DNA from: Macrostomum lignano | Taxonomy: Eukaryota | Assembly (NCBI GenBank): GCA_002269645.1 | Contig: NIVC01000035.1 | Span: 859,362 to 923,361, forward strand | Reading direction: 5' to 3' | DNA length: 64,000 nt | Part shown: piece after piece, positions 7,536 to 61,649 of the stretch | Numbering within the stretch: the stretch's first letter is position 1 | Layout: every line of letters begins with the position of its first letter | Program-made: the position numbers and the translations under genes | Notes under the pieces: generated by a model | What the model was told of the DNA's origin: nothing | The model's database searches: none | What the model saw: only the letters and a program-made list of their open reading frames with translations

Positions 7536-8276
7536 TCAGTTAAACGGCGACAGGCACTCGCACAGACCGGTTCTGACTGCGCCGCGACTGTCAGCGTCTC
7601 CAAGAAAGGTTCGGGCGGCCACCGCGTTCTCGGTACCTCTGTACCGGTTGTCGGGTTCTCCGCTGCCCCACAGGCTGTCGTCGAAGCTGATGTTGCAGGC
7701 CACCCAGCGCCAGCCTCCGCCGGGCTCCGCACTGCCCGGAGTCTGGAAGCCGCCGACCCACATGGAGACGCCGCCACCCTTCGTGTTGAAAACTTGTCCG
7801 ATGGCAGCCAGCTCGGCGCTGTCGATCACGTCCGCCATGATCACCAGACCGCTCTCCGACTCGCACCTCTGTCTCTGCACTGTCCAGGTGTTAATCGCAT
7901 TGAAGAGCTTGTACTTCACTCCGCAGTGGTCGTCTCCGAAGTCGGACGGACAAAGCGCACCCGGCTCGAGTCCCGGCTGCTGCTTCAAAAACACCCGGCC
8001 TCTCCTGGAGCAGCCGCAGTCCCTCACCGACTTGCTGCACTTGTCGAACACGAACAGCTGGCACGGACCGTCAGCCAGGCTGAACGCCTGACAGCGCGGC
8101 TCCATGCTGCAGAGCAGCGAGCACTCGACGCTCAACTTGGCCAGGGGCTCGTTTCTGACGAACTCGGGCCGGATGCAGAGCGAGCCGTTGATGGCGTGGA
8201 ACACCTGGCAAGGGGACACAGCGGGTGAGCTCAGAAGCAGTAGCAGCAGCAGCGACACAACTTTCATTGATGTCAT
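7536..8276 (-). CDS. Secreted PAN/apple + C-type lectin protein (paralogue A, 246 aa, intronless)
   Basis: MTSMKVVSLLLLLLLSS signal peptide; ECSLLCSMEPRCQAFSL..C PAN-like Cys pattern; CTLD motifs WVGG, WRW, W..GEPDN, LCE. Confidence 0.88.
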   Translation of the reverse strand: MTSMKVVSLLLLLLLSSPAVSPCQVFHAINGSLCIRPEFVRNEPLAKLSVECSLLCSMEPRCQAFSLADGPCQLFVFDKCSKSVRDCGCSRRGRVFLKQQPGLEPGALCPSDFGDDHCGVKYKLFNAINTWTVQRQRCESESGLVIMADVIDSAELAAIGQVFNTKGGGVSMWVGGFQTPGSAEPGGGWRWVACNISFDDSLWGSGEPDNRYRGTENAVAARTFLGDADSRGAVRTGLCECLSPFN

Positions 8277-8695
8277 GTTCGACGCTTTGAACCTTTTATG
8301 GGCTGTTTGGGCTGAGTTGAAAATAAACTGCAAAATATTTGCAGAAAGAGATGCACTTTATTGCCGCCCTGATGTTTGAAGCCTCAGTGAGCATCTCTGC
8401 TCTGGCCAATCCAAGGGATCTGTTATAATATTTGGACTTGGGAATTTCGCTGTGGAGCAATGCTACAAAAAACAATTGCTTACCGTTATATATATGCTTT
8501 TTATAACTTTCAGAGGCTCTCAATAAGCAAGCAAGGAAGGAGCTTAAAAGCAAGAAAGCAATCGACAGCGCAGGTCTGCAGAGGCTCGCAGCTGGTTTCA
8601 GGCATGAAAGCGCTTGAAGCAGAAAATCCTGCTTCTGATTGTTTCGTGCTCTTCTTGCCGCTCCGTTGCACCAGTCATTCCTATCCACGCTATGT

Positions 8696-9612
8696 GGGGG
8701 GTCTTACTGAAATTGCTGAGATGTCGAGGCTTACTTGGGGAATTGCTGAGATGTCAAGGCTTACTGGGGGAATTGCTGAGATGTCAAGGCTTACTGGGGG
8801 AATTGCTGAGATGTCAAGGCTTACTGGGGGAATTGCTGAGATGTCAAGGCTTACTGGGGGAATTGCTGAGATGTCGAGGCTTACTTGGGGAATTGCTGAG
8901 ATGTCAAGGCTTACTGGGGGAATTGCTGAGATGTCAAGGCTTACTGGGGGAATTGCTGAGATGTCAAGGCTTACTGGGGGAATTGCTGAGATGTCGAGGC
9001 TTACTTGGGGAATTGCTGAGATGTCAAGGCTTACTGGGGGAATTGCTGAGATGTCGAGGCTTACTTGGGGAATTGCTGAGATGTCAAGGCTTACTGGGGG
9101 AACTGCTGAGATGTCAAGGCTTACTGGGGGAATTGCTGAGATGTCAAGGCTTACTGGGGGAATTGCTGAGATGTCGAGGCTTACTTGGGGAATTGCTGAG
9201 ATGTCAAGGCTTACTGGGGGAATTGCTGAGATGTCAAGGCTTACTTGGGGAATTGCTGAGATGTCAAGGCTTACTGGGGGAATTGCTGAGATGTCAAGGC
9301 TTACTGGGGGAATTGCTGAGATGTCAAGGCTTACTGGGGGAATTGCTGAGATGTCAAGGCTTACTGGGGGAATTGCTGAGATGTCAAGGCTTACTGGGGG
9401 AATTGCTGAGATGTCAAGGCTTACTGGGGGAACTGCTGAGATGTCGAGGCTTACTTGGGGAATTGCTGAGATGTCAAGGTTTACTGGGGGAATTGCTGAG
9501 ATGTCAAGGCTTACTGGGGGAATTGCTGAGATGTCAAGGCTTACTGGGGGAATTGCTGAGATGTCAAGGCTTACTGGGGGAATTGCTGAGATGTCAAGGC
9601 TTACTGGGGGAA
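8696..9612. repeat. 30-bp minisatellite, ~30 copies (gaattgctgagatgtcaaggcttactgggg)
   Basis: Direct inspection; translates as GIAEMSRLT(G/W) repeats. Confidence 0.95.
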
Positions 9613-10508
9613 TAGTTAAAATATCAAGGCTGAGAGGTCAGAAGCTAAATGTCGTTTATTCAAAAATTTTCATTCCATTCTTTGAAAATTTTACTTGAAT
9701 TAGGTGATTTTGTTATGTCTGAGACTGTCATTGGTTTTGGAGTAGCAAGCTCGTAGCCGCTAAATGACATATTTTTGCTCAATCCTGAGCCGAGATTCAG
9801 GGCTCTATTTTTATAAACCTTGCTTTTTAACGTATGAGCATAGTAGTTCAACTTGAAAAAATAAAGAGCAGCCTGTGCTAAAATTCATATCTATGGCTAA
9901 GCCATACATAGCATCTCCTCCCTTTAGTTAGTTCCGTTCAGGTCAAGTCCCAGTCAGCCTTCCCCAATCAGATCACGAACTACTTAATTTTTGTTAACTT
10001 AAGTCTACTTAAGTAGTCCGTGAATCAGGTCCTGTAGAAAACTCTTGGTTTTTGTCTCAGTCTCTGACTGCGCCTTGGTTCGGGGCTGCGCTCCGGTGTT
10101 AGGGTTTCTGTTCTCCGGAGTTAAAGATCTCTGGCCGGGAGATCCAACACAAAATTACGCGAATGTGATAGGTAACTATTCACAATAAAAAGATTAGAAT
10201 TTATGACTAGATAAATATGGGAGAGATCGGTAACCAGAGATCCTGAATCAAACCTTAGTTTTTGCAGTCGTGATGGAGATCGGCAAACGGTGCAGAATCT
10301 CCGAGGGACAACATAATCTGGTTTAGGATCTCCGGATGGGGAGACCTGACCATGCCCTGAGATTCCACAACGGTTATCGATCTTCTACATGTAACGGTTT
10401 GTATTTTCCGATGGAGATCTTAAACCCTTTAAGGTCTCCGGTCGGAGATCCCAGCCCATTTGCAGCCTCTGAATCGGCGACCCAAAACTGGCCGGAGCCC
10501 TGGAGATT

Positions 10509-11945
10509 CTAATCCGGCAGTACAGGGGCATCGCAGTGCCGTGCCATGCCGTCCCTCACCTTGGCAACCAGGGTGTCCGACCCAGCGCAGTGCGGCACAA
10601 TCAGTGGGATCGCTAGATTGTGCAGCACCCCGGCCAGCTCGTTGGCGCCATGTGGGACCAGAGTCTTCAGGACCGCGATGAGCTTGGCTTCCCGGCGTTG
10701 ACGCCGTTCATTGGCCTTGGACCCAGAGCCGTCTCGCGTCCACACTCCAGTGAAGGCGAAGTCCTCGAGGCTGTGGCCATGGTTGCTGAAGTGGCGGGCC
10801 ACTGGAGTGTCGCGTGCGTGCCTGATGTCGCCGACGTGCGCTAGCATGCGGCCGCGGATGCTGTTGACCGTCTCGCCGACGTAGACCGTGCAGCCGCAGC
10901 GGCGGCAGAACACGGTGTAGACGGCGTTGATTGAGTTGCAGTCGATCCTCTGGTTGATGGTGATCGTGACGGTCGTGGACGCGGATCCCGGGCAGACAGA
11001 GGTGAACCTGGCGTGAAGGCAGCACTTGCACAGCCGGACCGGGTTGCAAGGCAGGAAGCCGAACTCCCACTGCCTTGTCGGGTAGAAGCCCAACTCCGCC
11101 AGCACCTTATACTTGACATCGCGTAGAAATCGCCTGTTGTAGCCCTGGTGCTGCGCCAGATTCGACATCAGCTCGGTACAGGCCGCGTTGAAGTCGACTA
11201 TCTGGGAGCACCTGCGGGCGTATCTGATGAGCTGGGACTTGACCACACCCTTGAAAGTCCGCCTTGGGTGAAATGAGTCGCGGTGGATAAGAGCTCGGCT
11301 GTCCGTGGGCTTGAAGAAGACTCTGGTCGCCAGACGCTTGGAGTCCCCCTCGCGGTCCCAGAAGACGGTGGTGTCCAGGAAGTTGACCTCGGTGCTGCTG
11401 TAGCTCAGCTGCAACCTGATGTTCGGGTCGAGGCCATCCAGGAGCTCTTGGAAGCGGACCAGCTCGTCTCTCGTTCCATGCCAGGCGCCAAAGATGTCGT
11501 CGATGTAGCAAAGCCACAGGGCAGGCTTCTGCGGGCTGAGCTCCAGGCCCCGCTGCTCCCAGTAGCCCATGTAGATGTTGCTGTAGCTGGGTGCAAACGA
11601 CTTCCCCATGGCCGTGCCTTTCACTTGCAGGAAAAGTTTCCCGTCGAACTCGAAGTCGTTGCGCTCCAGGTTCAGCTTGAGCAGACTGAGGAGGCTCGCG
11701 TCTGGGCGCCGGGCGTCCGGGTGCTCCCTGAAGGCCCTCCGCACGCACTCGAGTCCGTCCGCGGTCAGGATGTTGGTGTACAGGCTGGAGACGTCCATGG
11801 TGAACAGAAAGGTCTCACCCGGCGCCGGGCAGGTGATGTCTCTGATGGCCGCCTGGAAGTGGTCGGTATCCCTGATGACGATCGGCTGCAGGAAGCTGTC
11901 GATGAAGCGGCCGCTGGCATATGACTCGCTGTGCACGTCAGACAC
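10509..11945 (-). mobile_element. Penelope-like retroelement (RT + GIY-YIG endonuclease), 5'-truncated, Neptune-like
   Basis: RT motifs LFTMDVSSLYTNI, GTAMGKSFAP and YIDDIF. Cys linker PCNPVRLCKCC. GIY-YIG AVYTVFCRRC...YVGET...R...H...HF...E. Confidence 0.9.
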
Positions 11946-12899: not shown

Positions 12900-15761
12900 C
12901 TAATGCATTGCAGACGCTCCTGAAAGCTTAAGAATCTTTCGCTGGTTCGGACCGCTTTTAGACTGAGTAGCGCTTGACATGTCTTTTACGAAATTCTTGG
13001 CAAAGCAGTTAAAGCAGTTAAAAAGCCTACAAACTAGATGGTGCTGAATATTGTGACCGGCAGTGCACATGTTATTGCCGAAGAGTACGCTTGAAAACCG
13101 CTCATCGTCGGTGCACCGATCAAAAACTTTACAGAACAATTGTCGATGGCAAGATAACGTCAAAAACATGTTTTTAGTGGCTTCACTATTCCAAATTCCC
13201 AGAAATACTTTCCAACAGTGAACTGCGACCTGATAAGCAAAATCACTGGGCCTTACAAGGCCGCCTCTGTCGACGCTGTCCAGAAAAATTGAATGGCACA
13301 GGTTGGCTTCGTCAGTTCTTGAGCTCTCATCTGTGGCAATAAGCGAGTCAACACACTACTTGCACTTTGTTACCGCAACAGTAGAGCGAGCGACAGCACC
13401 AGTTACGTAGAAAATTATATTAAGATCATCAATCGATGGCTTTGTATCGAGTTGGATAGCCTCAGATACAGAGTCGGCGACATTTTCAAGTTCCGTTGTT
13501 TTTTCCGGTTGGCGTTCTTCCACTGAAAGTGCAGCTGCTTTTTCGATATCCAGCAGCGTTACATTTGAAAACTTCAGAAGCAAGACAGCGCGGATTTTTC
13601 TGTCATTCTCAAAAACTTGCTTCATTGACACGAAGTAATTTGCACCAGATAGCTGCCGCAGCCAGCCAAATCGAGATTCCAATGCATCTGATTGCAGTTG
13701 ACCTAGCAAAACATAATTGAATCCTAGATGATCAATCAAGAAACTAGCACAGACCGAAATAGCAAGACAAGCTTGCCTCAAAGCGAGGAACGTTTCCGCC
13801 GTTAATCCCAACCGGCCACTAGACTTCCAGCGTTGCAAAAAATTGGCAAAATCTCTAAGAAACACTAACTTCCAGTCCAAAGACGAGCGCACGGGGTCCA
13901 TACTTATGTCTCGCTTATGCTTACCTTTGACGGACGACTTTACGTTCAGCACATTCCAGAGCTTTAAAACAAGTGATATAAAAAGGGCCGCATCGTTCCA
14001 TTCAGGCTTTCCGCTGTGTCTAGAATAGCATATGAGCGCATCTCTCGTGGACTCCGAGAACACAGAAGTTGCCAGTTGTACAGAGACCCGTTCAATATTT
14101 TTTGGTTCCAGAACGGTGCGTGAAAGCTAGTGTGCCTTCTTAAGAGGCGCAGAGGACTCCATTTGAAACAGTTCCGCAATGTGGTTAAAATTAGCAAGGC
14201 AACCATTTGGCAAGTATGATAGAAATTCTGGACAGCGGGAAAGTTTTCGAGATTGAAAATTGTTGTAGACGTTTTTTAAGTCATGGACTGGGTCAAAAAT
14301 TAGAAAGATTGGCTGTCCAGACACAGGATCGGAAATACTAGTTGTTAACAAGCCATTGCAGAGATAAATATGGAAGAACTTACGATTAACTGTAGCATTG
14401 TCTACAGAAATCGCAACGATATTAAATCCAACGCTCCTCACTGTTCTCATGACTTCTTGGTAGCAGTGGTATTGCTTTTCGGCTGTTAGATTCGCCATAG
14501 GAAATATTGCTACGATGTCTTTGAACTTGCTCACCAGAGATTTTACCATAAAGCAAAGCAAAGTAGACACAACTGCACCATCAGCTGTAAGACCGTAGAC
14601 TTCCACGCTGCTATATTCTACACGTTTTGCTATGTATATTTCGTCAATAATCAGCAAACATGTTCTTTCGAAATTGTTTAGGTTAGAGATTCGAAGGTTT
14701 AAATAGGCCAGTCCATTATCCAGTCCAGACTCACCCTGTACGCGTTTAGTAATCTTCTGCAGAGTTTTTACGGATGGCAGGCATAGCACATCTTCTTCCA
14801 GTAGAACTCGGTAGGCTGCTGAACTCGACGCGTGGACAAGATAGGCGAAAATCGATAGCTCGGGCGAGTAATTCCGATGGTACTTTGTTGAAGAAGCCAA
14901 CTCGATTTGTTCAAGAATGAAGCTAAGCTTCCAATGTTTGTCACACCCCTCCACTAGAATTCCTATGTATCTTTTTAAGTTCGTGATAACGGAGTCCAAA
15001 AGTCGGTCTGACGCACACTTGTCATCACTACACCATGCTTTTAAGCGAGCCAAGAGATTCAATAATTGAGACAAAGTGCTTAGTCTATCTGGCAAGATGC
15101 CATGGTAAAGCCTAGGCGAAAGGACTTCCTTGCCACAACTTACCTGCACTTTAAAATCAGCGTAAACTGAGATTGAACCGGCCAAGTCTAGAACGCCACT
15201 GACATACGCTAAGAAATAGATCATTAAAATCAAGTCCATGATGACAACCTGAAATCCTTCAGGCTTTTTGCTCTCCTCAGCCAGTCGAACTTTCACCTCC
15301 GCCAGACTCAGAGAGCTGATGTTATCGTCATCTTCAAATGCCTCTTCCATGGCTTCTAAGCGTTGAACTTCTTTGTCTAGGCGACCGGAGACAGTTGCAA
15401 TCGAAGCGGAGTGTCGAACAGCGGCTGGCCTTGATGACAGATAAGACGGTGCGTTAGGAAAGATAGTTGGTACTGCGTCCTTCTTTAAGTACCTTTTCGT
15501 CAGCTTCTTCGTTTCAAAGTTCTTCGATCTGCGAAAATTGCTGTCGGAATGTTCCTCGATGAAGTCACTGGGCACGAAATGCAGGGAGCACATCCTCGAG
15601 TGCTTAGAAGGAACAAAATCTTTTCTTGGGTTGGCTTTCAACCATAAAGCTTTGAGAGCTTCATCTTTCGGAATAGAATGAAATGTCACCTTAGTATCGA
15701 CTTGTTGCGAATGATTTTTGTAGCCACTTGTGCAGCCAAATGCACAACACTTGTAACCCAT
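12900..15761 (-). pseudogene. THAP-domain P-superfamily (THAP9-like) transposase 1; one frame interrupted by two TAG codons
   Basis: THAP CCAFGC...W...CSLHF...AVPTIF; catalytic-region motifs IIDEI, SVDNA, FDPVHDLKN, QSDALESRFG and RGGL. ORFs 14127-15761, 13356-14063 and 12900-13169 are all in the same frame. No TIRs found. Confidence 0.88.
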
Positions 15762-15990: not shown

Positions 15991-18900
15991 GCTAGGGGCT
16001 GGAGCATGCTCCTGTGCTCCATAGCTAGCTATACCCGAAGCATGCTCCCAGTATAAACCAATAAAAATTGCGTACATAGGGGGTTGCAGCCACAGACCAA
16101 TATAACTAGACTGCGCATGAGGGTAAAAAAAGTTGTGCCTTTTTCCTAGTAGGAAAAGTGGCACCCCAGTGCCCACTCCCCCACGATCGATAATTGTGCC
16201 CGGGCCTTTCTTCTTACCCTCAGCCAACTCAGCTTGTCGGGGTCTCTTTTTTCTTTATGTTCGTAACTAGTGAAAATTCAGACTCAGTAAGAAATAGGAT
16301 TAACAAATCAACAACTACAGATTCATTTTTTATTTATCTAGAATTTTTTGCACGCATTTAATGGCAAATATATAGTTCATCACGGGAATAAGCTTAAACA
16401 GAATGCATTGAAGCCATAACTTACCAGCCTCCATATGCGAATACGCTGATTACAAATTAAGAAAAATCGCTGTTCGAAGCAGCCTTTGCCTCTTGCCGGG
16501 TTTTCTTCCAGCGCGTGAAAGATCCTTAGCCAGCTTCTTCATTCGAATATTTATAAAAAGCATAGCCATTACTCGAATCAAATGCAGCTTGTGAGACTCA
16601 ATGCTGATACTCGCGGATGCCGAATGAGAGTCCAGTTCAGGGAACAGATCGATTGACATGCGCAGAATCTCCTGAACAGCTACATCACTAGAGAATCCGC
16701 TGCTGTAGCTGGCACGCCGAACAACAGTCTCTGCATTGAGCAGCACCCGCAGGACATTGCTGCTAGGAAAAATCAGGCCGCCAGTTCCTTCCTTGTTCAA
16801 AACATTTTTTATGGCAACGAGTGAGCATGGTCCGCGTGAAGCTCCTGGCGTCTCAGAGCTTGCGATCAGAGCTGAACTGCACGGAGCACATTCAACTGCT
16901 TTCATCATTCTTCGGACGACCGCGCCTGCGATATAGCACACGATGGACTGGCAAATTTCACACACCGATGCATTCTTGCAGTGTTGGATTAAACCCAGAC
17001 TCAGTCCCATTTCATTTTGAGCTTTCATCTGCTTCCATGGCTGCTGTCCTGATGATGATGGCAGACAAGACAATGATAACTGAATAGTGGCATCCTGCTG
17101 CCTCACATTCGGACTCACGGACTGTAGAATTCCACCTCCGGCATGCACCAACAGCTGCCTGAATGCTGAGCGAAATTGCGTGGGCGTTGGGTTATGGTTC
17201 CAGCCATTTCGTAGCCTTACTGCATTAAAAAACAGTTCGAGAAAATCCTGCGAAAGCTTGTAAGTGCAAAGAAAGAAGAATTCGCCAGTCGAAAATAAAT
17301 ACTTAGCGAGCTCCATAATGCCATGGCAGTTGGTGATGAAGCCTAGGAAGCCAGTCTTCTTTGCGGTTTTACTATCTTACAGCCAGCCGGAGTTTCAAGG
17401 CTACGGAGAAGTTCGATCGAGCTAGAGAAGAAATCGATCCAATCCGACTGATTGTCAGCTCTAAGCGCCATTTTGGCGCCATAACTGACCAGCCGCTTGG
17501 AATTGAAAGCGTCGAACAAATCATTCATGTGCTCAACGAAATCTGCGGTGACTAGCACATCAGAGTGCTCAAATCCGATCACACCTTGCTGATGCACCCA
17601 TCGCAAAGAGTCGGCCACTGACTTGCTAAACAGTTGTGATGCCAAATAGACCTTCATCTTTAAATTAGCAAAGTTGATGTGATGCCTGCTTAACTTGTTT
17701 CCAAGTCGGAGTCCATGACTTTCTTGTACTTGCTGCAACATGGAAACATATTTCCATTCAATATTTCCTCTGTTCGGCCAAACAAATCTTCCCAGTGACT
17801 GCCACTGATTGCGAATCAGCTTTAACATGTGAGGCACATCCAGGAAGGCTGCAACCTGAATGCTAGGATCGCAGGGGTGCGGGAAGCAGGCGACGACCTC
17901 GTTCGGAGAACTTATCCTGGAGCCAAGGAGTTCGATCGCTCGAATGTTGTGCTGAGTTCCATCGCATGTGAATGATGTTGCTATGACGCCAACCTGGTAC
18001 AGTCGCTGAATGGATTCCTCTACAACGCTCGAAAGAAATTCGCCGTCAACTCCATTCACTAGAAAATACCCTAAAGGCAGCTTCCAATAGCTCTTAAGCC
18101 CCACTGCCATCACTACCAGTGCCGAAGACGCCTCCTGATCACTTGGTTTGCCATCACCTTTGTCAACGTAGCCAAAAAACATACCTTCGCTTGAATTCCA
18201 TTCAATCATCGACTCTAGCGACATTTCATCAGCAACAACGTTGCAGTAGTCAAAGGCTTGGCCGTCAGTGGAGCTGCGTCGCCGCGAAAGTTCCTGGAAA
18301 GCCTGATCGCAAAACCCTGGAAAGCACTTTGCATTTGAGAGCCATCTTCTAAGTGACGCAGGATGTGGAAGCTGAAAGTACTTTCGTACATACTCATAAG
18401 CCTTCGGACTATAGAAATGCAATGTAGAGGCGAATTTGCGCACTTCGTCAGAGAACCTCTTTGTCCTTTTTCTATTGCAAGGCACGATGCTGCTCAGCAG
18501 TGAATCGGAGGTCAAGAAATTCAATCGAGATGCCGCTGCTTCGTTTAACATGCACTTGGCCTTTAGATCCAGAATTGCGTCCTTCAATGTTTTGGCTCTA
18601 TGTTTAATTTGCCTGTGCTTTGAGCGCAGAGATCGAATTTTTCTGTACTTGCTCTGTACCGTCCGACGCAGGATTTCAATGGCCTTAGCACTTTTCTTAG
18701 ATCTCTTATGAGCAGCCAAAAGCCTTTTGTATCTGCGCCTCAGGTTTTTTAGGACTCTCACCTTTTCTTCGAATAGTTCTCTGGCCACACAGTTGGCATG
18801 CAGTTCTTGTAGGGGTTGTTCTGGTTCATCTGCCTCCGTGTCAGTTGGCTGAGCCTTCGTCTTGCTACATTCCGGCGCTTTCAAAAATGCAGCAAAGTCA

Positions 18901-20571: not shown

Positions 20572-21210
20572 AAGACTGCAAGCATCCCCCAGATAGCAAG
20601 CATCCCCTAGATAGCAAGCATCCCCAAGATGGCAAGCATCCCCCAGATAGCAAGCATCCCCCAGATTGCAAGCATCCCCCAGATAGCAAGCATCCCCAAG
20701 ATAGCAAGCATCCCTCAGATAGCAAGCATCCCCCAGATAGCAAGCATCCCCCAGATAGCAAGCATCCCCCAGATAGCAAGCATCCCCCAGATAGCAAGCA
20801 TCCCCCAGATAGCAAGCATCCCCCAGAAAGCAAGCATCCCTCAGATAGCAAGCATCCCCCAGATAGCAAGCATCCCCCAGATAGCAAGCATCCCCCAGAT
20901 AGCAAGCATCCCCCAGATAGCAAGCATCCCCCAGATAGCAAGCATCCCCCAGATAGCAAGCATCCCCCAGATAGCAAGCATCCCCCAGATAGCAAGCATC
21001 CCCCAGAAAGCAAGCATCCCTCAGATAGCAAGCATCCCCCAGATAGCAAGCATCCCCCAGATAGCAAGCATCCCCCAGATAGCAAGCATCCCCCAGATAG
21101 CAAGCATCCCCCAGATAGCAAGCATCCCCCAGATAGCAAGCATCCCCCAGATAGCAAGCATCCCCCAGATAGCAAGCATCCCCAAGATAGATAGCATCCC
21201 CAAATAGCAA
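20572..21210. repeat. 18-bp minisatellite (ccccagatagcaagcatc), ~35 copies
   Basis: Direct inspection; gives GDACYL / DSKHPP ORF repeats. Confidence 0.95.
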
Positions 21211-21349
21211 GCATCCACCAGACAATAAGTAGCTAGTGCGACAATTTCCTTAGCATTATAGCGGCTCCTTTAAAATTCGCTTACTTTTACGTTTGAAATT
21301 GTGTGTCTTTTTATGTTTAACAGGGTGGCTCTTTTATGTTCTACGCTCG

Positions 21350-49143: not shown

Positions 49144-49212
49144 TAGTAACTGCATATCAAATGCATATTTTTTTGAACGGGGGGGCAATGAAGACAGAAT
49201 CTAGCTACCAAA

Positions 49213-50606: not shown

Positions 50607-51293
50607 TCAAACGGCGACACACTCGCACAGCCCGTTCTTTGTCCTGGGATGGTAGGCGTCACCAAGACCAAAGTGAGCAAAGATTGCGTCCTCTTTGCCT
50701 CCTCCGTTGCTGGGCTCCGCTCCGCCCCACAGGCTGGCGTCGAATCTGATGTTGCAGGCCACCCAGCGCCAGCCTCCGTCGGGCTCCGCACTGCCCGGAG
50801 TCTGGAAGCCGCCGACCCACATGGAGACGCCGCCAGCCTTCGTGTTGAAAACTTGTCCGATGGCAGCCAGCTCGGCGCTGTCGATCACGTCCGCCATGAT
50901 CACCAGACCGCTCTCCGACTCGCACCTCTGTCTCTGCACTGCCCAGGTGTTGATCGCATTGAACAGCTTGTACTTCACTCCGCAGTGGTCGTCTCCGAAG
51001 TCGGACGGACACAGCGCACCCGGCTCGAGTCCCGGCTGCTGCTTCACGAACACTCGGCCTCTCCTGGAGCAGCCGCAGTCCCTCACCGACTTGCTGCACT
51101 TGTCGAACACCGTCAGCCAGGCTAAACGCCTGACAGCGCGGCTCCATGCTGCAAAGGTTCGAGCACTCGATGTCCGACCTGGCTCGAGGCTCGTTTCTGA
51201 CAAACTCTGGCCGGATGCAGAGAAAGCCAGACACGGCTTGGAACACCTGGCCCGAAGACACACCGGGTGAGCTCAGCAGCAGCAGCAGCAGCA
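50607..51293 (-). pseudogene. Lectin paralogue G, 3' part (split by a retrotransposon)
   Basis: LLLLLLSSPGVSSGQVFQAVSGFLC..., a ~17-nt frameshifting deletion at ~51110 and a 2-nt deletion near the end; loop EPSNGGGKEDAIFAHFGLGDAYHPRTKN. Confidence 0.87.
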
Positions 51294-54200
51294 CGACCTC
51301 CTACCCGCCAAGTGGGGTGCTGTGGATACGCGATGGCCCGACACCAATCGCGGAACGAAAGGAGGTGTTCTGTTCAACTACAAAGACAGCGCACGCTACG
51401 CTGTCAGCGCCAGGATGATCACCTTGTCTGGTGATGTCGAATCTAACCCCGGCCCACCATCGCCGGGGAGGAACCTGTGCGGAGTTTGCGGCGGAAGGCA
51501 TACTCACAGAGGGCCAAAATGCTCGGAGTGCTCTGGCCAGCTGCATCTTAAGTGCAGTGGGCTGAACAGAGGGAGTTTCTACGCGCAGAAGGTTACCAGC
51601 ATAGAATGGATCGGGCCGTGCTGTAGGAAGGAGCCATTGCAGCCAGCTGGGCCCATTACTCCTGGTGAACGCCGGCCGCCTACCAGCAGTGCGAAATCCG
51701 ATGCAGCCAACCAGGCTGCTGGCCAGTTGCATCTGTCGGAGCAGAAAGTTGTGTGGGCCAAGCTGAGCGGCTGGGGCTGGTGGCCAGTCAGGATGAAGGC
51801 TGAAGACTGGCCATGTGTCGGCAACGAAGTGGTGGTTTGGTGGTTTGGATGCAATGATAAGACTTTTTTTAAAAAAGCCAATAAAAATAACGAATTCACC
51901 ACCTCCGAGACTGACCGCTTTGCGCAGCAGAAAGCAGGTTGGAAGAAAGCCGTAGCGGAAGCCACTGAGTTCGTTCAAAGTGAACAAACGAAAGGAGCCA
52001 GCCAGCCGCCAGGAGAGGTCGAGGAGTATGGTAGGACAGAGCCAAAAGGCTCAGCTAGCGTCAGCCAAGCCTGCGGAGGGAGATGTTCCATCTGTAAAGC
52101 AAATATGAAGTTCGGTATCAGCGGAATTCAGTGCACGGGATGCGGAGTTAGAGTGCACCGCAGCTGTAGCGGATGCAGCAGGTACAACACCCAAGCCCAG
52201 TCCAGCTGGAGATGCGCCAGATGCGGCAGCAGCCCCCGGGGACGACGTCGCGGAGGCTGAGCAGCACCGCAGCAGCGGCGCCTATGACGGTGACCAGCAA
52301 TGCGCTACCAAGGACAGTGGTGGACACTGTGCGGAGTGTCACAAGTACAGAAGGCGAGGCACCGGGGTCAGCTGCGGCGGCTGCGGGAAGACCGTGCACT
52401 GGACCTGCGCGGGCATTGAAAGCCGCGCCTGCAGAGAGAGGTTCAAAAAATATGGTGGATGGGAATGCAGCCTGTGCAGGGCGACCAAGGGGAAGGCCGC
52501 GGAGGTTCAGCGCTTGATTATGCCACCAGTCCGGCAGGGACGGTCGGCAACGAAAGCATCAGAGTCGCGCAGTGGAACTGCGACCACCTCAGAGCCAAAC
52601 TGCCGCTGCTTGAGAAGTTCCTGGACGACCACAACGTTGACGTTATGCTGCTCCAAGAGACCAAGTTGAGGGAGGAAGACGGTACCCTATCTATACCAGG
52701 CTACGAGATTGTCAGAAAAGACCGGCACAGGAAACTCCTCAGTACATTCGGTAGGGGAGGAGGCGTAGCCACGCTCATCAAAGCAGGAATCAAATACGAA
52801 GAGGTGGAATGCAACCTATGCCAGAAGGACGGCATCGAAATGATCGCTACTAAGATCTGGCTGAGAAGAGACCGCTCCAGCAACGGCAACGGCAACAGTG
52901 TCCAGATAGCGAATGTGTACATCCCGCCTGAAGGGTCCAGAGCGGTGAGCAGCGAGGCCATCAACAAACTCCCAGCAGGCAGGAATTGGCTAATCGCTGG
53001 CGACTTTAACGCCCACCACTCCCTCTGGGACAACATCTGTCCAGGTGACGACAGAGGTACAGCGCTCGTTGAGTGGCTGGACAACAATGAATTAGCTGTG
53101 CTCAATGATGGCAGCGTCACTAGGGTTGATCCCACCGGGAGCATCAAATCATCGCCAGATATCACCTTCTGTAGCAGAGAGGACGAACCCATATGGTCCT
53201 GGGAAACAGCTCAGCTGCACGGGTCGGACCACCACCCCATCATCATGCAGCTAGGGCATGGCTGCAGCAACAGAGAGCCAGCCAGAAAGATCATCAGCTG
53301 GAATTGGAAAGCCGCTGACTGGACAGCCTACAGAGACAACATCGAAGCCGGCCTGGCAGAATCGATTTGCGGCGCTGGATGCGTTAAGGAGAATGAGAAA
53401 AAGATCAGGGATATCATCATCAATGCTGCGAGAGCGTCGGTCGGTACCATTGCGCGCACAACCCGGAACCGGTCCTCCATCAACGACGAGGTGAGGGAAG
53501 CCCTGGAGGAACTTGGCAAGTGCGACGCCTCAGCTGAACCGGAGCTATGGGCCGAAAAAGAACAACGGCTCAAGTCTGAGATTAGGAAAAGCAAGGAGGA
53601 GGATGGGCGAAACCACCTGAGTAACAACGCGAGCAGTGCAAAAATGTGGTCAGTAGTCAAACGCCTCAATGGCAAAAGCTGCCCTGCAGCTGCCCTGCGT
53701 GAGATGGAAACTTCAGCGGAAGCAGAAATGGACCAGCCCATCCTCATGTCCGAAGTCGTGAGTGCGCTTGAAGCCATGGATGGTAACTATAGGAGGTTGC
53801 GCGCCTGTCGAGTTAAGCGGCTAAATATGTTTGCTTGCGCCTCCTTTTGATTTCAATTAGCCTTTCAACTTTACTGGCTTTACTGTTCAATCGAAAGTTT
53901 AGAACACAAGTTTTTGTTCGAACGATAGTTGTTAGGCCGCCAGTTTGCTCGCTCGCAAGTTGGCCCATTTCTACTTTTCCGCACTTATATTTATACAACA
54001 AAATTTGCCTCAGTCAGCGTTATTTCAAACCAATAGCAATTGCAAGAAAGTCTGGGAATTATTTTTTTGGTGCGAAAGTTTGGATGTCTGCGTGCCAGTT
54101 TCATGTGAACAGCGAAATCGGACACCGCCGTTGTGCGTCATTCGGCGGCTCCACCAGTGTTGCAGCTGTATCGATGTCGCAGATTTTGGGCGCTGATCTC

Positions 54201-56992
54201 AGCAGTTTTCGTGAGAACCAGACGTTCAGGCGTTCTTAGTGCAAGCCAAGTTCAGCCGGCTAAACTTTTCTAACTTTCACTTGTGCAACAATTGAGCGTT
54301 GGGAAGCACAATGAACTCCTGCTGAACTGGTCTTGCTGTCCTGAGCCGATCGGCTGATTGTTGCGTACTGCTGAGATCGTTGATGCTGCTGCTGCTGATG
54401 GTGCAAGCCGAGCTACGTTGGGTGTCTTAGACAAAAGCTAGCGTCCGCAACGTTGGGGCCTACTTCATAACTTTGGTCCCCTCGCTCCAGGCTCACATTG
54501 GGTCCTCTCGTTGCCGTCCAGCCTCGCCAGGTGACTCGACCAGGTGACACGACCAGGTGACCTAGCCTATCCCCGTTCCTAGACTTATGAGCATTTTCTT
54601 ATGGCTCTTAGTAACAAAGCGGCCGGCGAAGACCTTATCCACCCCAGGCTCCTCAAGGAATTGCCATCCAACAGCCTACCTGTCATCACTAGCCTCTTCA
54701 ACGACTCCTACAGGCAGGCCGAAGTGCCCCAGAGCTGGCGCACGGCTAGAATCATCCCGCTCCTGAAGCATGGCAAAGATGCTGAATGCATACCCTCATA
54801 CAGGCCGATCAGCCTCACATCCTGCCTAGGCAAATGGCTTGAAAGAGTTATCACCAACAGAATTAGTTACCACCTCGAGAGCAAAGGGCTCCTTAGCGAC
54901 TGCCAGGCTGGGTTTAGGGCTGGCAGATCCACGGAGGACCAACTACTCAGGCTCGCGCAGGACGCCGATGACGGCTTTCAGAAGAAAATCTGTACGCTTT
55001 TGCTACTGGTGGATTTCGAGCGAGCGTTCGACAAAGTGCTCCGCACCGGCCTCATCTGGAAACTGATCAGCAAAGGAGTGGGCAGGCTCTCGATCAGATG
55101 GATACAAGCGTGGCTGAGTCACAGATTAGCTAAAGTCAACTTCAATGGCAAGGACAGCAAGCTTAAAGTGCTCGAGCAAGGCCTGCCGCAAGGCTCCGTC
55201 CTGTCGCCGCTGCTGTTCCTGGTCTACATTGACGACCTCCTAGAAGGTCTCAGCGCGGTCGAGGGGGTCAAAGTTAGCGGCTTCGCGGACGACCTCGCCA
55301 TCTGGACCTCTGGCAGGCAAGACCAGATGCGCGCGAGTATGGATAAAGCCATCCAGCTCACGGAGACTTGGAGCAATAACTGGCTTATGCCGATTGCAGT
55401 AAGCAAGTGTTCCCTCACGCTTCTGTCCACGACTAGCACTAGAACCAGCCTAGAAGACACCACCTTCACGATGTACGGCAGCACTATCAGCTGGGCCCCA
55501 ACCGCGAAGTTCCTGGGGCTCACCTTCGACAGAACGCTGAAGTTCGAGACGCTCGTTAACAACATCAAAGAGGCATGCCTTAAGAAAGTTAACATATTAA
55601 GGAAACTGGCTGGCAGTGACTGGGGCTGGAGCCTGGAGCTAATTAAAATCACGTACGAAGCTCTTATTAAGAGCAAGATCCTGTACGGCGCTCCAGCATG
55701 GATGCCTTGGATCAGCGAAAGCAGCTGGCACAAGCTCGAAGTGATACAGCGCTCAGCTGAAAGGATCATGACTGGTCTCATGGCTACTACCCCGGTTGAA
55801 GCGCTCAGTATGGAAAGCGGCCTTGAGCCCCTCAAAGTGTGCAGCAAGGCCAGATGGGCCGAGAAATTCGACCGCCTCAGACGACAGCCCCCGGTAGCAT
55901 CAGAAGAGAGCTGGTTGGCGAAGGGCCAAAGCAGAGGCTTAAAAGAAAAGGCTGGAGAGCCCGAGCTAAAGAGTTGCTTGATGACCATGGTCTGCTCAAC
56001 ATCACAGTGGAGAAGGATGAACAACCTGCCACGCTGGCCCCATGGGAGGAAAGGAAATTCACGATTCACATGGAAGGCCGGCGCAAGCTTTGCGAAGCTG
56101 ACAACAGGAACCTGGCCGAGAACATCATCCAAAGCTGCGCAGCCGACGCAGACCTCATCCTCTACACGGACGGATCAGTTAGCAGTGACGGTAAAGGTGG
56201 TGGCGGAGTCGTTGTGACAGCCAAAGGGATCGACGGCTGGGACACACAAACCCGTATTGAGGTCGACGCCGGCAAGCCCTGCAGCTCACTCCAGGCTGAG
56301 CTGCACGCACTGCAAGCAGCCACTGATTGGATCCGTCACCATGGCCGGGGAAAAAGCACCTGCATTGCCACGGACAGCCTCAGCAGCCTCCAGCTCCTCC
56401 ACAGCAGGAGAAGTAATCCGATAGCCAATAGAATCACCAACAACTTGCAGGCAGCCAGTGAGACCAACGGCCGGCTCATCATTTGCTGGGTCCCGGCCCA
56501 CTGTGGCCTCAGCGGGATCGAAGAGGCCGACACCACGGCAAAGGCCGCAGCCGGCAGACCAGCTGGAGGAGCCGGTGTGCTTGCCAACCCGGTTAAGAGA
56601 TCCATCTACCGAGACCTGACCAGAGCGAAGGAATGGAGCCACCAACGCAGCAAAGAGACCTACAGCAAAGGCCCCAAAAGCAACTGGAAGAAGGACTATG
56701 CAGACCGCAGCGAAGCAGTGAGCTTCAGACGCTTCCGTACCGGACACTCCCTCGAACTGAACCAGTTCCGCAAGAGACTTGGCAACCAGGACAGTGACAG
56801 CTGCAGGCTATGTGGAGATGGCGAAGAATCCAACTCGCACTTAATGGATTGCCCGGCTACGTGGAAAAGGAGGCAGGAGTACAACATCACCGGCCTGTGC
56901 GATCTGTGGAACCAACCAGACGCTGCCTACAGGTTCTGGAACTGGATCAAAGAAGCGCATGAGTTGAGCGGCACACACACACACACACACAC
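51294..56992 (+). mobile_element. Ingi-like non-LTR retrotransposon: 2A-like peptide, PHD-PWWP-PHD-PHD, APE, RT, RNase H, Zn finger; (CA)n tail
   Basis: GDVESNPGP (51430-51456); three C4HC3-like fingers; VVWAKLSGWGWWP...WWFG...WKKAVAEA; QWNC...LLQETK...GDFNAH...GSDH; YRPISL...GLPQG...FADD; YTDGS...QAEL...TDS...WVPAHC; CRLC...H...C. About three frameshifts and one nested insertion. (CA)n at 56972-56992. Confidence 0.88.
53788..54610. mobile_element. 823-bp unclassified non-coding insertion with a 5-bp direct repeat GTAAC
   Basis: gtaac at 53783-53787 and 54611-54615. Removing the insert and one repeat copy restores ...EAMDGNKAAGED... in frame. No TIR seen. Confidence 0.8.
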
Positions 56993-57050
56993 GCAGCAGC
57001 AGCAGCAGCAGCAGCAGAAGCAGCCGCGGCGCGATGTTTGCGGATGCCAT
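56993..57050 (-). pseudogene. Lectin paralogue G, 5' part (start codon and signal peptide)
   Basis: MASANIAPRLLLL...; the upstream sequence is homologous to that of D and C2. Confidence 0.87.
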
Positions 57051-57672
57051 TCACTGCAGTTTCTTCGATTCAGTTTCCAAGCTCTCAATTTCACAGGTTC
57101 TTCAAGCACAGAATGCTGAAAAATTACAGAGGGCTCTGCAAGCGCAAGAGTCCCGGCTGGCTTGCTGTTTGCCAGACGCGACTAAATAAAGTCAATTTGA
57201 GAACCTCGTGCTCCTCCAGAATCAACAAGACGACAGAGCTGTATTGCCAGAATAAATATTGAGTTTTGAATGAACGATCTTGCACCTGTTTGTCTGTTGG
57301 TGTCAGATTGAATAACTACTGACAGGGCTGTCTGAGTCTGCAGCACCTGCCTTGCGTCCCAAGCCATGCAACTTCAAGTCTCTTTAAGTGCTCGCTTGTT
57401 TGACTTTTAAGTGGGTGAGAAACTTTCATTGACTCTGCTGGGTTGCGGGTTGAGTATAAAGTATAAGTACAAGTCATCTCGAGAGCTCAATGAGAAATGT
57501 CTGCTACAAAATCGCGGACGCGAAGAGAGAGTTAGATAAGAGCTTCAGCATCTCTTGAGAAATTGAATTGATGGTGCTGAGAACGTTTGTGCTAATCAGC
57601 GGACGCACTGGCACACTGCTGATAGAGTTTGATATAATTTGAAGTGTCATGAGTCTCATTTGGTCTCTGACG

Positions 57673-57962
57673 ACTCAGCTCCAGTATCTCACTGGTAGCT
57701 CACATGCACATGGATTATTTTACAGGACTACTCAGCTCCAGTATCTCACTGGTAGCTTACATGCACATGGATTATTTTACAGGGCTACTCAGCTCCAGTA
57801 TCTCACTGGTAGCTTACATGCACATGGATTATTTTACAGGGCTACTCAGCTCCAGTATCTCACTGGTAGCTTACATGCACATGGATTATTTTACAGGGCT
57901 ACTCAGCTCCAGTATCTCACTGGTAGCTCACATGCACATGGATTATTTTACAGGACTACTAC
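57673..57962. repeat. 57-bp minisatellite, ~5 copies, reverse orientation relative to 34263-34782
   Basis: Reverse complement of the same unit, in a paralogous upstream block. Confidence 0.93.
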
Positions 57963-60914
57963 TTCAGTCCAAATGAGAGTTCGGCTGCAGTTGGGTGTTA
58001 ATGTTCATGGGCCAAAAAGCAGACTTTACTGCTGAGTTTCTGGACTTCATATGATGTCAGACGGAGAGAAAATCTCTCTTACTCTCTTGAAGAGAGAGAG
58101 AGAGAATTAAGTCGAGTGTCTAAACGCACGAACTCCCACTTCCAGACGTCAAGCCTAGTAACAAAATTCAGTGATCACTTACTGGTGCGGGCTCCTCTTC
58201 TTTGTCGGGCAGGTTCTCCGAGCTCGTTTCTTCAATTCTTCTTCATCCGGAACAGTCTTCTTGAGTTCTAAAATCGGCCGAATATGAGAGCTTAACAGTT
58301 TAATCCGTCGACGTCGAAGTAGTCCTCAAGTGCAGAAATCAAAGATGCGCCCAAATAATTGAGGTCCTCCAGAAAGGCCGTCTTCTTCTAGAAATAACGG
58401 AATCGGAGTCGTGTGCCCCTATCGGTTACTCTAGGGTACCAAAATCAATTAATCGATAATCCTCTAAGGGTATCGGAATCAGTCCGCAGATCCTATCCAA
58501 TCCCTTAGGAATAGGGAGGCCTCAAATTCAATAACCCAGTAAATTAAGCCTCTTGCAAAGCCCAAGATCTCTTGAGGCTTATCCGAGTCTGAGATATCAG
58601 CTAGGATTTTCGCTTGTATTTGTACACAATTTGTCGGCCTTGTTCACGATGAGTTGCGCGCTCAACCTCATCCGTCTGCTGCTGGCCTCCGTTCTCATCT
58701 ACTGCGACGGCTCAGCGTCAGCTACTGGTCGCTCCACTAACGGTGAGCCCTCCGCACCGGTATTGGGGCAGCGCATCACTGTCGCCGGTGTTACACTTTA
58801 AACTATCCGGGTTTTTTTGTCTGGCCCGGATATCCGAACGCACTTACAATATCCGCCCGGATACTGCCAAGCAAAAAACCTGCTTTTTTTCTCCTTCCCG
58901 GATTTCTTGAGCTGCTTTGCATTGTCTGGGCACTTTGAGATGTCTCTTCCGGACATCGTACGGCACTGACTCTGCTATCCGGCCCGGAGATCACAAGAAG
59001 GGGAAGTTGTCTTGGGACATCCGACTGTAGGTTGAAAGAGAGTGGTCAGTCTGCGGAGACAAAGGTTTGCTTTAGGACATCCGGCTACTGATATCCGGGG
59101 CTAGAAATAGCTAAATTTCTAGATCAATTTTCGCAAAGTACGCTAGTAGAAAATCACTTTTTGCTACTTTTCAATCGGAAACATCTACGTCATGCTTATT
59201 TAACTGCATGTGTATATTTCAATAACAGTTTCGCATTTCACACGCTCCAAAAGAATTAAAGTTAAAGCTACTACTGTCAACCGAAAAGTTACTCCCCTCC
59301 CCAATCTGATTCGATAAATCAAAAACTGGCGATCCGCCGAATGAAGCGTGAATTTTTTTCCAAAACGTAGGACTTGGACAAGAAATATATTCCAACTATC
59401 TGAAAAGAATGGGTGTATTATAATTTGCGCAACACATTCTTTTGCGGGCTATTAGCTCGTACACTGATATTCATGGCATGTACGCTTGTGCGGGTGCTTT
59501 TAACGGCAGTCTATTATCGATTTATTCTTAGACTGTATGATTGCATCTTATCCGCCCCTCCCAAGCACTCTGAGTCAGTCCCATTCTCGCTTAATGGTGT
59601 CCTTCTGCCCCACGCATTCGCATGCGCCTGCCGCCTCTGGCCCACTCGATCCCTCTTCCGTCTTGCCAGGTCCCTCTGCTCTGGATCCCCGGGCACGCGG
59701 GCATCAAAGTCAACGATTTTTCGACCTACGCGCGGACGCCGCTGCCTCTCCCGTCTTCTGGGCTCCTTTTTAGCTCCGCCTGAGGCAAACATCGTCTCAG
59801 AAAGTTTTATTTTATGACTATAGTCTTTAGTAGCTCTCTGCTCAAGCTAATCGTGGAGCCTTCAATTGCAACCTGTAGTAGTTTTACTAAAGCTTTTGTG
59901 GTGTCGCAAGTACATCGATTTTAGTACGAGAAGTAGCATTTTCCTAACGTGTGCATAATATTTTTCTGCTAATACTAAAAGTAGTCCAATGTGCTGCTAA
60001 CAAACTGCTAACGAACGACATACTTATGTCTTTCAGGTATGGGATAATATAATGAAGCACTGTTCAATTATTTATTGTCTTCATAGCCAACTGTGGAGCT
60101 ATTGATGCCGATTCCCATGCCCTCCGAAATTGAAGACAGGCTTAAATAACTGGAAGCGGTACAGCAATTTAACATCAATCATAGTTGGAGCTAATTAGCA
60201 GGCTGCAATTAAAAATGTTCGTAAAAATGTCAGATCTACGACAAGCAGGAACTTGCCGCTTCTACGGGCAGGTAGGTTTTAGGTAATGATCAACACACAG
60301 CAAATGTGGGACCTTGAGCCCCGCAGTCAGTCAAAAAATTAACGGTGCGCTGCCTCCCTAAACTGGGACACACACTGCTTCCTCTGCCGTCCTTTGACGT
60401 CCCACTGGTGCGCCTGTTGGGTCGCCTCATCATAACTCCGAAAACCAAAATAGTGTTGGATATTGCTAACACTTTCGGAGTTATGATATTTCGGGTTTAT
60501 GATGCCACCCCGCCTGCCGACTAAGCTAAGACCAAAGCAACCGAATATAGCAATGAATAAATTATCAATAGTAAGCACTTTTTCTCGAAAAGTGCCATTT
60601 CATAGGAATGATAATAAATAGGTCTTTTACTTTGTTTAAAAGGAGCCATTACAGCTTTTCTCTTTCGACTAGCGTTCCGTTTCAATGATACTTCAAGTAC
60701 TGCATACGAGCGTTTTTCGTAAGATAGTTACAGATCTCTAAAACTTCCAAACTGCAAAATTGAACAAAACCCAAAAATGTTGGAAAAATAAGCACGGGAA
60801 TATTGATGAGAAGAGCTCCGGCGGAACAATCGTACAGACTCATGTGACTACACGCCGGATGCCTACGAAAGTTTAGCCTGAATTCAAAGCAAACACCTTG
60901 AGTTCATTTTTTCG

Positions 60915-61649
60915 TCATTCGAAGGGCGACACGCACTCGCACAGCCCGTTCCTTGACTCTTGTTGGTAGGCGTCACCAAGAACAAAGCGAGCAAAGACTG
61001 CGCCCTCGCTGCCTCCTCTGTTGTCGGGCTCTGCGCTGGCCCACAGGCTGGCGTCGAAGCTGATGTTGCAGGCCACCCAGCGCCAGCCTCCGTCGGGCTC
61101 CGCACTGCCCGGAGTCTGGAAGCCGCCGACCCACATGGCGACGCCGCCAGCCTTCGTGCTGTAAACTTGTCCGATGGCAGCCAGCTCGGCGCTGTCGATC
61201 ACGTCCGCCATGATCACCAGACCGCTCTCCGACTCGCACCTCTGTCTCTGCACTGTCCAGGTGTTGGTCGTATTGAAGAGCTTGTACTTCACTCCGCAGT
61301 GGTCGTCTCCGAAGTCGGACGGACCCAGCGCACCCGGCTCGAGTCCCGGCTGCTGCTTCACGAACACCCGGCCTCTCCTGGAGCAGCCGCAGTCCCTCAC
61401 CGACTTGCTGCACTTGTCGAACACGAACAGCTGGCACGGACCGTCAGCCAGGCTGAACGCCTGACAGCGCGGCTCCATGCTGCAGAGGTTTGAGCACTCG
61501 ATGTCCGACCTGGCTCGAGGCTCGTTTCTGGTAAACTCGGGCCGGATGCAGAGCGAGCCGTTGATGACGTGGAACACCTGGCCTGGGGACACACCGGGTG
61601 AGCTCATCAGCATCAGCAGCAGCAGCGACACAACTTTTATTGATGTCAT
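60915..61649 (-). CDS. PAN + C-type lectin paralogue H (244 aa)
   Basis: Intact ORF from MTSIKVV; loop EPDNRGGSEGAVFARFVLGDAYQQESRN. Confidence 0.88.
   Translation of the reverse strand: MTSIKVVSLLLLMLMSSPGVSPGQVFHVINGSLCIRPEFTRNEPRARSDIECSNLCSMEPRCQAFSLADGPCQLFVFDKCSKSVRDCGCSRRGRVFVKQQPGLEPGALGPSDFGDDHCGVKYKLFNTTNTWTVQRQRCESESGLVIMADVIDSAELAAIGQVYSTKAGGVAMWVGGFQTPGSAEPDGGWRWVACNISFDASLWASAEPDNRGGSEGAVFARFVLGDAYQQESRNGLCECVSPFE

Follow-up and report, generated by a model that had tools for sequence, protein, structure and literature searches.

Organization of the lectin cluster

The subject of this report is a cluster of PAN and C-type lectin genes located in a 64,000-nucleotide stretch of a contig (NIVC01000035.1) of the flatworm Macrostomum lignano; this whole stretch, referred to here as the window, is animal DNA rich in mobile elements and satellites. 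A tblastn search with one copy as the query identified exactly ten loci of one PAN + C-type-lectin family between 7.5 and 61.7 kb (Table 1); loci were read in all frames, and the DNA of the copies was aligned. An earlier reading of the letters alone (the original prediction) had also listed ten loci, which it took for a candidate diversified recognition system, and every peptide quoted there is present in the sequence. Five loci (A, C, D, F, and H) are intact, uninterrupted open reading frames (ORFs) of 244–247 amino acids (aa), two (B and G) are pseudogenes, and three (X34, E, and F0) are fragments. Three of the seven tail variants quoted in the original prediction come from dead copies (F0, G, and E), and the term intronless used there is correct for the uninterrupted coding sequences (CDSs) but holds for the coding part only.

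The 5′ end of pseudogene G is cut at approximately 51,300, beside a long interspersed nuclear element (LINE), while the 3′ end of X34 stops about 100 bp short of a satellite with a 57-bp unit. Fragment E presents 96% identity to gene H across the last 50 nt. Gene H carries a Cys109>Gly replacement at a cysteine of the N-terminal hairpin of the C-type lectin domain (CTLD) that is conserved in at least 90% of relatives, suggesting that H may be impaired in function despite its open frame. Long antisense ORFs (150–200 aa, rich in Pro, Ser, and Arg) were found over every lectin copy, e.g., at 7492–8091 (+), 32715–33266 (+), 35768–36319 (−), and 60960–61493 (+); these are probably a by-product of GC-rich codon usage.

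Table 1. Lectin loci and their flanking blocks, in window coordinates (N, N-terminal type; middle, middle type; tail, tail class).
Feature	Position	Strand	Description
Gene A	7536–8276	−	Intact 246-aa ORF (signal peptide, PAN, CTLD); N-type 1, middle type 1, tail class 1a
A upstream block	8277–8450	−	ATTGG, GGGCGG, and CATAAAG motifs at about −134 to −85; 97.7% identical to B upstream
B upstream block	31174–31500	+	Promoter-like, conserved
Pseudogene B	31501–~32200	+	2-bp deletion at alignment column ~410, 31-bp deletion, decayed EPSNGG-type 3′ end; tail-to-tail with C
C downstream flank	32093–32710	−	C + flank 93.4% identical to D + D downstream flank
Gene C	32711–33451	−	Intact 246-aa ORF; N1, middle 1, tail 1a; YRG>NGG and AA>AS relative to A/D
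C upstream block	33452–33735	−	97.9% identical to F block; doubles as head-to-head intergenic region with X34
Fragment X34	33876–34170	+	N2-type 5′ part (MASANIAP..., codons ~1–93); 7-bp deletion, frameshifted, Cys>Tyr
Gene D	35580–36323	+	Intact 247-aa ORF; N2, middle 1, tail 1a
D downstream flank	36324–36972	+	Homologous to C flank; abuts E downstream flank (tail-to-tail pair)
Fragment E	37367–37577	−	3′ part only (codons ~176–246, last ~70 codons); tail class 2 (VSPFE)
Fragment F0	45412–45547	−	Last ~42 codons; tail class 1b; in-frame stop just upstream
Gene F	46718–47458	−	Intact 246-aa ORF; N1, middle 2 (NTTN/VYST), tail 1b; protein used for structure model
F upstream block	47459–47814	−	Promoter-like, conserved
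Pseudogene G	50607–51297	−	5′-truncated, no ATG; 17-bp and 2-bp deletions; N2-like, middle 1, tail class 2 (EPS)
H downstream flank	60126–60914	−	60511–60914 similar to E downstream flank (76%); 60126–60417 similar to distal C/D downstream flank
Gene H	60915–61649	−	Intact 244-aa ORF; mosaic N end, middle 2, tail class 2
H upstream block	61650–61991	−	Promoter-like, conserved

Domain architecture and predicted fold

The family profile, the predicted fold, and the Pfam matches of relatives agree with the original assignment of the encoded proteins as PAN + CTLD proteins and, as sequence profiles and a structure prediction, confirm the CTLD and support the PAN domain. The predicted architecture consists of a signal peptide, a PAN/apple domain, an invariant Cys-rich linker (CSKSVRDCGCSRRGR), and a long-form CTLD; the linker is invariant in the M. 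lignano relatives described below as well. Searched against the PDB, the family profile matched the CTLDs codakine (5.9e-6) and CEL-I (3.7e-5) and the PAN domain of MIC5 (8.1e-5). None of the window proteins matched Pfam Lectin_C (PF00059) even at E ≤ 10, and their matches to PAN_4 (16–17 bits) were below the cut-off of 27; the homologues P0001 and P0004 reached 16.8 and 18.5 bits against Lectin_C, also under its cut-off (22.6). Among 22 aligned family members, eight matched Lectin_C at E ≤ 0.01 (best 1.3e-9) and six matched PAN_1 (best 2.1e-7); because the window proteins themselves remain below threshold, the Pfam support for them is only transitive.

The AlphaFold model of the gene F protein, for which the input alignment contained 22 sequences including distant relatives, presented a predicted local distance difference test (pLDDT) score of 90.2 and a predicted template modeling (pTM) score of 0.83. 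Foldseek matched the C-terminal 140 residues, with a probability of 1.0 and TM scores (target) of 0.77–0.84, to 1jzn, 1wmy, 2vuv, DC-SIGN, and mincle, which are galactose- and mannose-binding CTLDs. The PAN part of the model contains strands at residues 26–32, 40–43, 62–66, and 72–76 and a helix at 49–58, all with pLDDT > 95.

The tripeptide equivalent to EPN is EPD in A, C, D, F, H, E, and F0 and EPS in B and G; Glu and Pro are thus kept, as is the following Glu. The WND equivalent, as aligned with CEL-I, reads L-G-D (LGE in fragment E), i.e., the Asp remains, Gly takes the place of Asn, and the Trp is missing. The proteins have suitable cysteines for C0-C0′ (109 and 118), C1 (138), and C4 (239 or 241); C2 (the “EDC” position) and C3 (following the WND equivalent) lack a Cys, and Cys194 is additional. 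In the model of F (F numbering throughout), β3 spans residues 216–221, β4 225–229, and β5 235–242; the putative Ca2+-ligand positions E207, D209, E216, and D227 are conserved, and the variable positions are 212–215 (loop after EPDN), 217, 220–224 (end of β3 and turn), 229–236 (β4–β5 loop), 242, and 246. In classical CTLDs this face holds Ca2+ site 2 and the sugar. Both the CTLD alignment and the secondary structure of the model therefore place the variable tail at the canonical Ca2+/sugar-site end of the domain, where the original prediction had put it.

Segment types and mosaic structure

Two N-terminal types, two middle types (NAIN/VFNT and NTTN/VYST), and two C-terminal types (LSPFN and VSPFE) were found, as originally described. 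The first N-terminal type reads MTSMKVV in A, B, C, and F and MTSIKVV in H; the second reads MVSANIAP in D and MASANIAP in X34. All four N × C and all four middle × C combinations occur, as had been claimed, but the combination N2-C2 exists only as the truncated pseudogene G. The N-terminal part of H is itself a mosaic, in which an N1-like signal peptide is followed by an N2 block (alignment columns 131–170) that is 97.5–100% identical to D and X34 and only 70% identical to A, C, and F. The change from NAIN to NTTN in the middle segment (F and H; codons 127–130) creates an N-glycosylation sequon. The tails fall into three classes with small differences inside each, namely 1a (A, C, and D), 1b (F and F0), and 2 (H, G, and E); the tails of A and D have the same protein sequence.

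The almost invariant central segment, originally attributed to all ten loci, is contained in seven of them, and the B copy is 87–95% identical rather than invariant. In A, C, D, F, G, and H this core (alignment columns 171–610) presents 83–100% identity by segment, mostly 96–100%, with the lowest values in two short middle-type patches. Identity between tail classes is 58–85% over the last ~140 nt.

Recombination was assessed with our own scripts for the pairwise homoplasy index (PHI) and for run-length permutation. PHI was far below the permutation mean in three sequence sets (p ≤ 0.0005), and, in a GENECONV-like test of the longest concordant run, eight of 21 pairs (B–F, A–D, B–C, B–D, D–H, C–D, A–B, and F–H) passed Bonferroni correction. 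Incompatible splits succeed one another along the alignment: {D,G} at columns 4–99, {D,G,H} at 135–165, {C,D,G} at 375 and 397, {F,H} at 382–514, and {F,G,H} and {G,H} at 620–748; segment identities repeat the pattern of the concordant tracts. PHI, the run test, the incompatible site blocks, the segment identities, and the flank identities (see below) agree in indicating recombination or gene conversion among the copies, so that the mosaic seen in the original prediction is backed by statistics. A recombination signal, discordant segments, and core synonymous divergence that is locally depressed relative to the flanks were all found, which is the pattern of concerted evolution.

Divergence and selection along the genes

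Synonymous (dS) and non-synonymous (dN) divergence was calculated pairwise for the five intact genes with our own Nei–Gojobori script. Values of dS were 0.02–0.09 in the core (codons 58–204), 0.09–0.58 in the first 57 codons, and 0.40–1.2 in the last 43 codons between tail classes, i.e., tail dS was 5 to 50 times core dS; in sliding windows, the proportions of synonymous (pS) and non-synonymous (pN) differences climbed together toward both gene ends. Because tail dS is this large against core dS, the ends and flanks must be old; the tail is an old rather than a fast-evolving end. What had been described as a hypervariable end consists of three old tail classes with little variation within each class. 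Strong local amino-acid divergence beside an invariant segment can thus mean that the invariant part is young through conversion, not that the variable part is fast, and similar contrasts should be read with this caution.

In the last 43 codons between tail classes of intact genes, dN was 0.13–0.30 and dN/dS 0.24–0.45; over all intact-gene comparisons, tail dN/dS was 0.24–0.5. When the tail was split, dN/dS was 0.33–0.95 for the loops and 0.13–0.25 for the remaining framework; the loops are thus elevated over the framework, but their values never exceeded 1. Each of the three tail classes is kept by purifying selection, and the positive selection postulated in the original prediction did not appear in any comparison of intact genes, none of which presented dN/dS > 1. 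Values of 0.66–1.36 (one of them > 1) were obtained only in comparisons involving the dead copies F0, E, and G, as expected from neutral decay. The tails of C and D present three differences, all non-synonymous (zero synonymous), too few to interpret.

Flanking blocks and gene pairs

An upstream block of ~200–350 bp (CCAAT/ATTGG, GGGCGG, and CATAAAG) presented ~85% identity among most N1 genes and 98% identity for the pairs A–B and C–F, groupings not seen anywhere in the coding region. The 5′ end common to D and X34 is a different one, and D is without the conserved N1 upstream block. With their flanks included, C and D are 93.4% identical over 1367 bp and lie in inverted order, 2 kb apart. 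Downstream identity is 68–76% between classes (F versus C/D, 68–73%; H versus E, 76%) and 91–93% for C–D. Two tail-to-tail pairs, B> <C and D> <E, each consist of a class-2-like and a class-1 gene; downstream of H, an E-type flank comes first and is followed by a 290-bp remnant of the C/D-type distal flank, so that H must once have had a tail-to-tail partner too.

Mobile elements and repeats around the cluster

Three P-element/THAP9-like DNA transposon copies were found at 16450–19382 (−), 13356–15761 (−), and 26356–29093 (−), the third of which is degraded. The copy at 16450–19382 has long ORFs of 679 aa (THAP, Tnp_P_element, TNP RNaseH_N, and a GTP-binding insertion domain) and 288 aa (RNaseH_C and THAP9_C) and may be recently active. 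A LINE at 39737–43204 (+), located between E and F0, has an apparently intact ORF of 1155 aa (endonuclease, reverse transcriptase, and RNase H). A second LINE, at 51322–57119 (+), encodes an ORF1-like protein with weak PHD and PWWP matches, but is broken, with the endonuclease, reverse transcriptase, and RNase H in three separate ORFs; pseudogene G is truncated at ~51,300, where the 5′ end of this LINE adjoins it. An ORF of 478 aa at 10509–11945 (−) presents YIDD reverse-transcriptase-like and GIY-YIG-like motifs by eye and no significant Pfam match; these motifs suggest a Penelope-like retroelement.

At 48223–50565, a truncated piggyBac-type transposase ORF (DDE_Tnp_1_7, 7e-39) precedes a perfect 1.35-kb (TCAG)n microsatellite of 338 copies, which comes to within ~40 bp of the stop codon of pseudogene G. 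The 57-bp satellite unit occurs in opposite orientation at 34268–34781, past X34, and at 57669–57960, 3 kb from H. Other arrays include a 30-bp unit (31 copies; 8711–9631, ~260 bp beyond the A upstream block), an 18-bp unit (36 copies; 20578–21222), and a 23-bp unit (88 and 44 copies; 21351–23373 and 24426–25442). No Rfam family scored above threshold in the window.

Proposed origin of the cluster and alternative explanations

We consider it likely that the cluster represents a lineage-restricted multigene family of secreted lectins that evolves by birth and death, with its core homogenised by interlocus gene conversion and its old tail classes preserved. Duplication at the DNA level, decay of half of the copies, and tract exchange among the copies can be seen directly; the duplications are assigned to the DNA level because the ORFs are not followed by polyA tracts and the duplicated unit includes a promoter-like block. 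The same two features led us to reject a recent burst of retrogenes, although an older retroposition of the founder could still have taken place, since distant M. lignano paralogues have introns. A cargo gene carried by a transposable element was likewise rejected, as the unit boundaries vary between copies and there are no shared termini.

The family would have grown by duplication of ~1.3–1.4-kb units comprising the promoter-like block, the uninterrupted CDS, and the 3′ flank, at least in part with a class-1 and a class-2 gene joined tail to tail; the ancestral unit was probably a convergent pair combining both tail classes, and several rounds of duplication were followed by disruption through LINE, satellite, and microsatellite insertions. 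This birth-and-death course may have left the intact genes, pseudogenes, and fragments in the numbers now present. Inverted and dispersed repeats are natural substrates for ectopic gene conversion, and repeated interlocus conversion between dispersed and inverted copies would have homogenised a core of ~440 bp, synonymous sites included. Tracts of varying extent would produce the patchwork at the edges, while both gene ends and the flanking DNA would retain old divergence, either because diverged ends resist conversion for want of homology or because selection purges converted ends if the classes differ in function. The tail classes probably encode alternative loops and strands around the canonical Ca2+/sugar site. 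By analogy with other invertebrate lectin expansions, we infer that the paralogues are two-domain proteins that are secreted and bind glycans, with a fine specificity that depends on the class.

Several points weigh against this interpretation. Gene conversion and unequal crossing-over cannot be told apart here, and the direction of exchange cannot be read from one haplotype. The non-canonical Ca2+ site (EPD/EPS, LGD, and no C2-C3 cysteines) may mean that sugar binding is altered or lost, and both the secretion and the lectin activity of the paralogues are properties that we infer. The intact genes have no canonical polyadenylation signal (AATAAA or ATTAAA) within 500 nt, an absence that says nothing in a flatworm, and the shared upstream block is missing from D. 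The loops exceed the framework in dN/dS, and all three recent differences between the C and D tails are non-synonymous; pairwise dN/dS from five intact sequences, with recombination and dS at saturation, could have missed positive selection at a few sites.

These last points lead to the alternative closest to the original prediction, i.e., a recognition family (immune or gamete) in which positive selection drives the binding end apart and conversion reshuffles N, middle, and C cassettes into favoured combinations. The variable stretches 212–215, 220–224, and 229–236 flank the four conserved Ca2+-ligand positions, all four segment combinations occur, and the NTTN middle type adds an N-glycosylation sequon, which, together with the faster loops and the non-synonymous C–D differences, would fit such a family. 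However, no intact-gene comparison gave dN/dS above 1, the values of 0.66–1.36 all belonging to comparisons with dead copies; the excess of tail over core dS indicates old rather than fast divergence; the tails form three classes only, with little variation inside each; pseudogenes and fragments make up half of the loci; and the N2-C2 combination is known only from a truncated pseudogene. Taken together, these data make this explanation unlikely, if still the strongest of the alternatives. A restricted form of it, with diversifying selection and adaptive shuffling at a few sites, is possible given that the loops outpace the framework, and has no positive support here. The proposal of a diversified recognition system is not supported, and the combinatorial shuffling of segments appears to be not a system but the residue of ectopic conversion among paralogues, half of which are dead.

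The invariance of the core could also result from constraint at the nucleotide level, such as an overlapping antisense ORF, RNA structure, or extreme codon bias, instead of conversion. Antisense ORFs of 183–199 aa do cover every copy, and the core protein, especially the linker CSKSVRDCGCSRRGR, is invariant in M. lignano relatives too. These ORFs, however, extend over the invariant core and the divergent 3′ end alike and thus leave the contrast between the two unexplained; constraint does not produce mutually incompatible site blocks and significant pairwise tracts; and non-coding upstream blocks are discordantly near-identical (98% for A–B and C–F versus ~85% for other pairs). We therefore regard constraint as improbable.

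Chicken immunoglobulin genes are diversified by gene conversion from donor sequences, and a somatic-donor model has also been proposed for snail FREPs. By a comparable programmed or somatic process, B, G, X34, E, and F0 would be donor cassettes from which somatic cells copy sequence into the expressed genes. Partial copies holding only the 5′ or the 3′ variable part do lie ~0.5–1.2 kb from intact genes (X34–C, E–D, and F0–F). The fragments, however, are decayed (frameshift, in-frame stop, and losses of Cys) and adjoin satellites and a LINE, as debris would; no recombination signal sequences or dedicated enzymes were found in the 64-kb window; and germline conversion explains all observations, so that a somatic process is highly improbable. 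We would give only marginally better chances to the narrower idea that X34, E, and F0 serve as donor cassettes in ongoing, possibly somatic, conversion, as a flatworm analogue of pseudogene-templated receptor diversification; if this were true, individual worms would carry more PAN-CTLD lectin variants than the germline encodes. An assembly or haplotype artefact, in which the copies would derive from one or two genes whose alleles were collapsed or duplicated, is just as improbable as the somatic process, for, although the region is highly repetitive and Macrostomum genomes are duplicated and difficult to assemble, each copy has its own flanks, orientation, and lesions, and no pair is identical (the closest, C and D, being 93.4% identical over 1.37 kb, inverted, and 2 kb apart).

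Birth and death with conversion of the core, the reading that we favour, makes this cluster a clean case of partial concerted evolution, in which a homogenised core coexists with retained old classes of the binding end. The A/C/D-type, F-type, and H-type proteins are candidate secreted lectins for work on flatworm mucosal immunity, reproduction, or adhesion.

Relatives and comparison with known systems

An exhaustive hidden Markov model (HMM) search identified 1189 proteins at E ≤ 0.001, of which ~20 were full-length relatives of ~250 aa and the remainder were multi-CTLD proteins. The named full-length relatives are all M. lignano predictions annotated as “C-type lectin” or “Apple domain-containing” (UniRef A0A1I8..., PAA63283.1, and PAA58610.1; P0001–P0010 and P0076), with 45–57% identity to the window proteins, and nearly all full-length relatives come from this species; this PAN + C-type-lectin family has been seen so far essentially only in macrostomid flatworms. 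The window proteins themselves are absent from the public protein collections searched. The window proteins share with these predictions the signal peptide, the PAN domain, the CSKSVRDCGCSRRGR-type linker, a CTLD ending in CEC-SPF, and the size, and the C-terminal part is the least conserved there too; one fused gene model with four units implies that those genes are clustered as well. Unlike the window genes, with EPD/LGD and uninterrupted CDSs, distant M. lignano members carry the motifs EPN and ND, and each is interrupted by a single intron, the position of which differs among them. In two of these, P0010 and P0076 (GCA_002269645.1; L003 10001–11386 and L004 10001–12308), the intron lies within the CTLD and after the signal peptide, respectively, and the genomic setting consists of ordinary housekeeping-type genes without a lectin cluster. 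Because the introns of these distant paralogues are differently placed, the uninterrupted CDS is, as judged from gene structure, a trait of the subfamily. The literature on Macrostomum or flatworm PAN or C-type lectins yielded only adhesion proteins and an unrelated intestine gene, and no study of the window family was found.

CEL-I, codakine, and the rattlesnake galactose lectin share with the window proteins the same predicted fold (TM 0.77–0.84), the N-terminal hairpin cysteines of the long form, and EPx plus the next Glu at the Ca2+ site-2 ligands. In contrast to those lectins, the window proteins have LGD for WND, no C2-C3 cysteines, an extra Cys194, a CEC motif, and an N-terminal PAN domain, and identity is ~20%.

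As regards evolutionary mode, lectin and receptor families are well known to form clusters of paralogues that include pseudogenes and undergo interlocus conversion. In primate SIGLEC11/16 (PMC5701461) and in the Gal/GalNAc lectin genes of Entamoeba (PMC3125142), paralogues, including pseudogenes, are reported to exchange tracts, resulting in mosaic genes and locally discordant trees. Both share the conversion mode of the window cluster, in other protein families and other organisms. By itself, the window cluster reveals no new diversity-generating mechanism.

The Sp185/333 (SpTransformer) genes of the sea urchin are likewise small, clustered, mosaic-like genes among repeats; these genes vary by presence or absence of elements and present many variants per animal as well as changes at the RNA level. 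Unlike Sp185/333, the window cluster has two or three alternative versions per segment, five intact genes, and a simple conversion signature.

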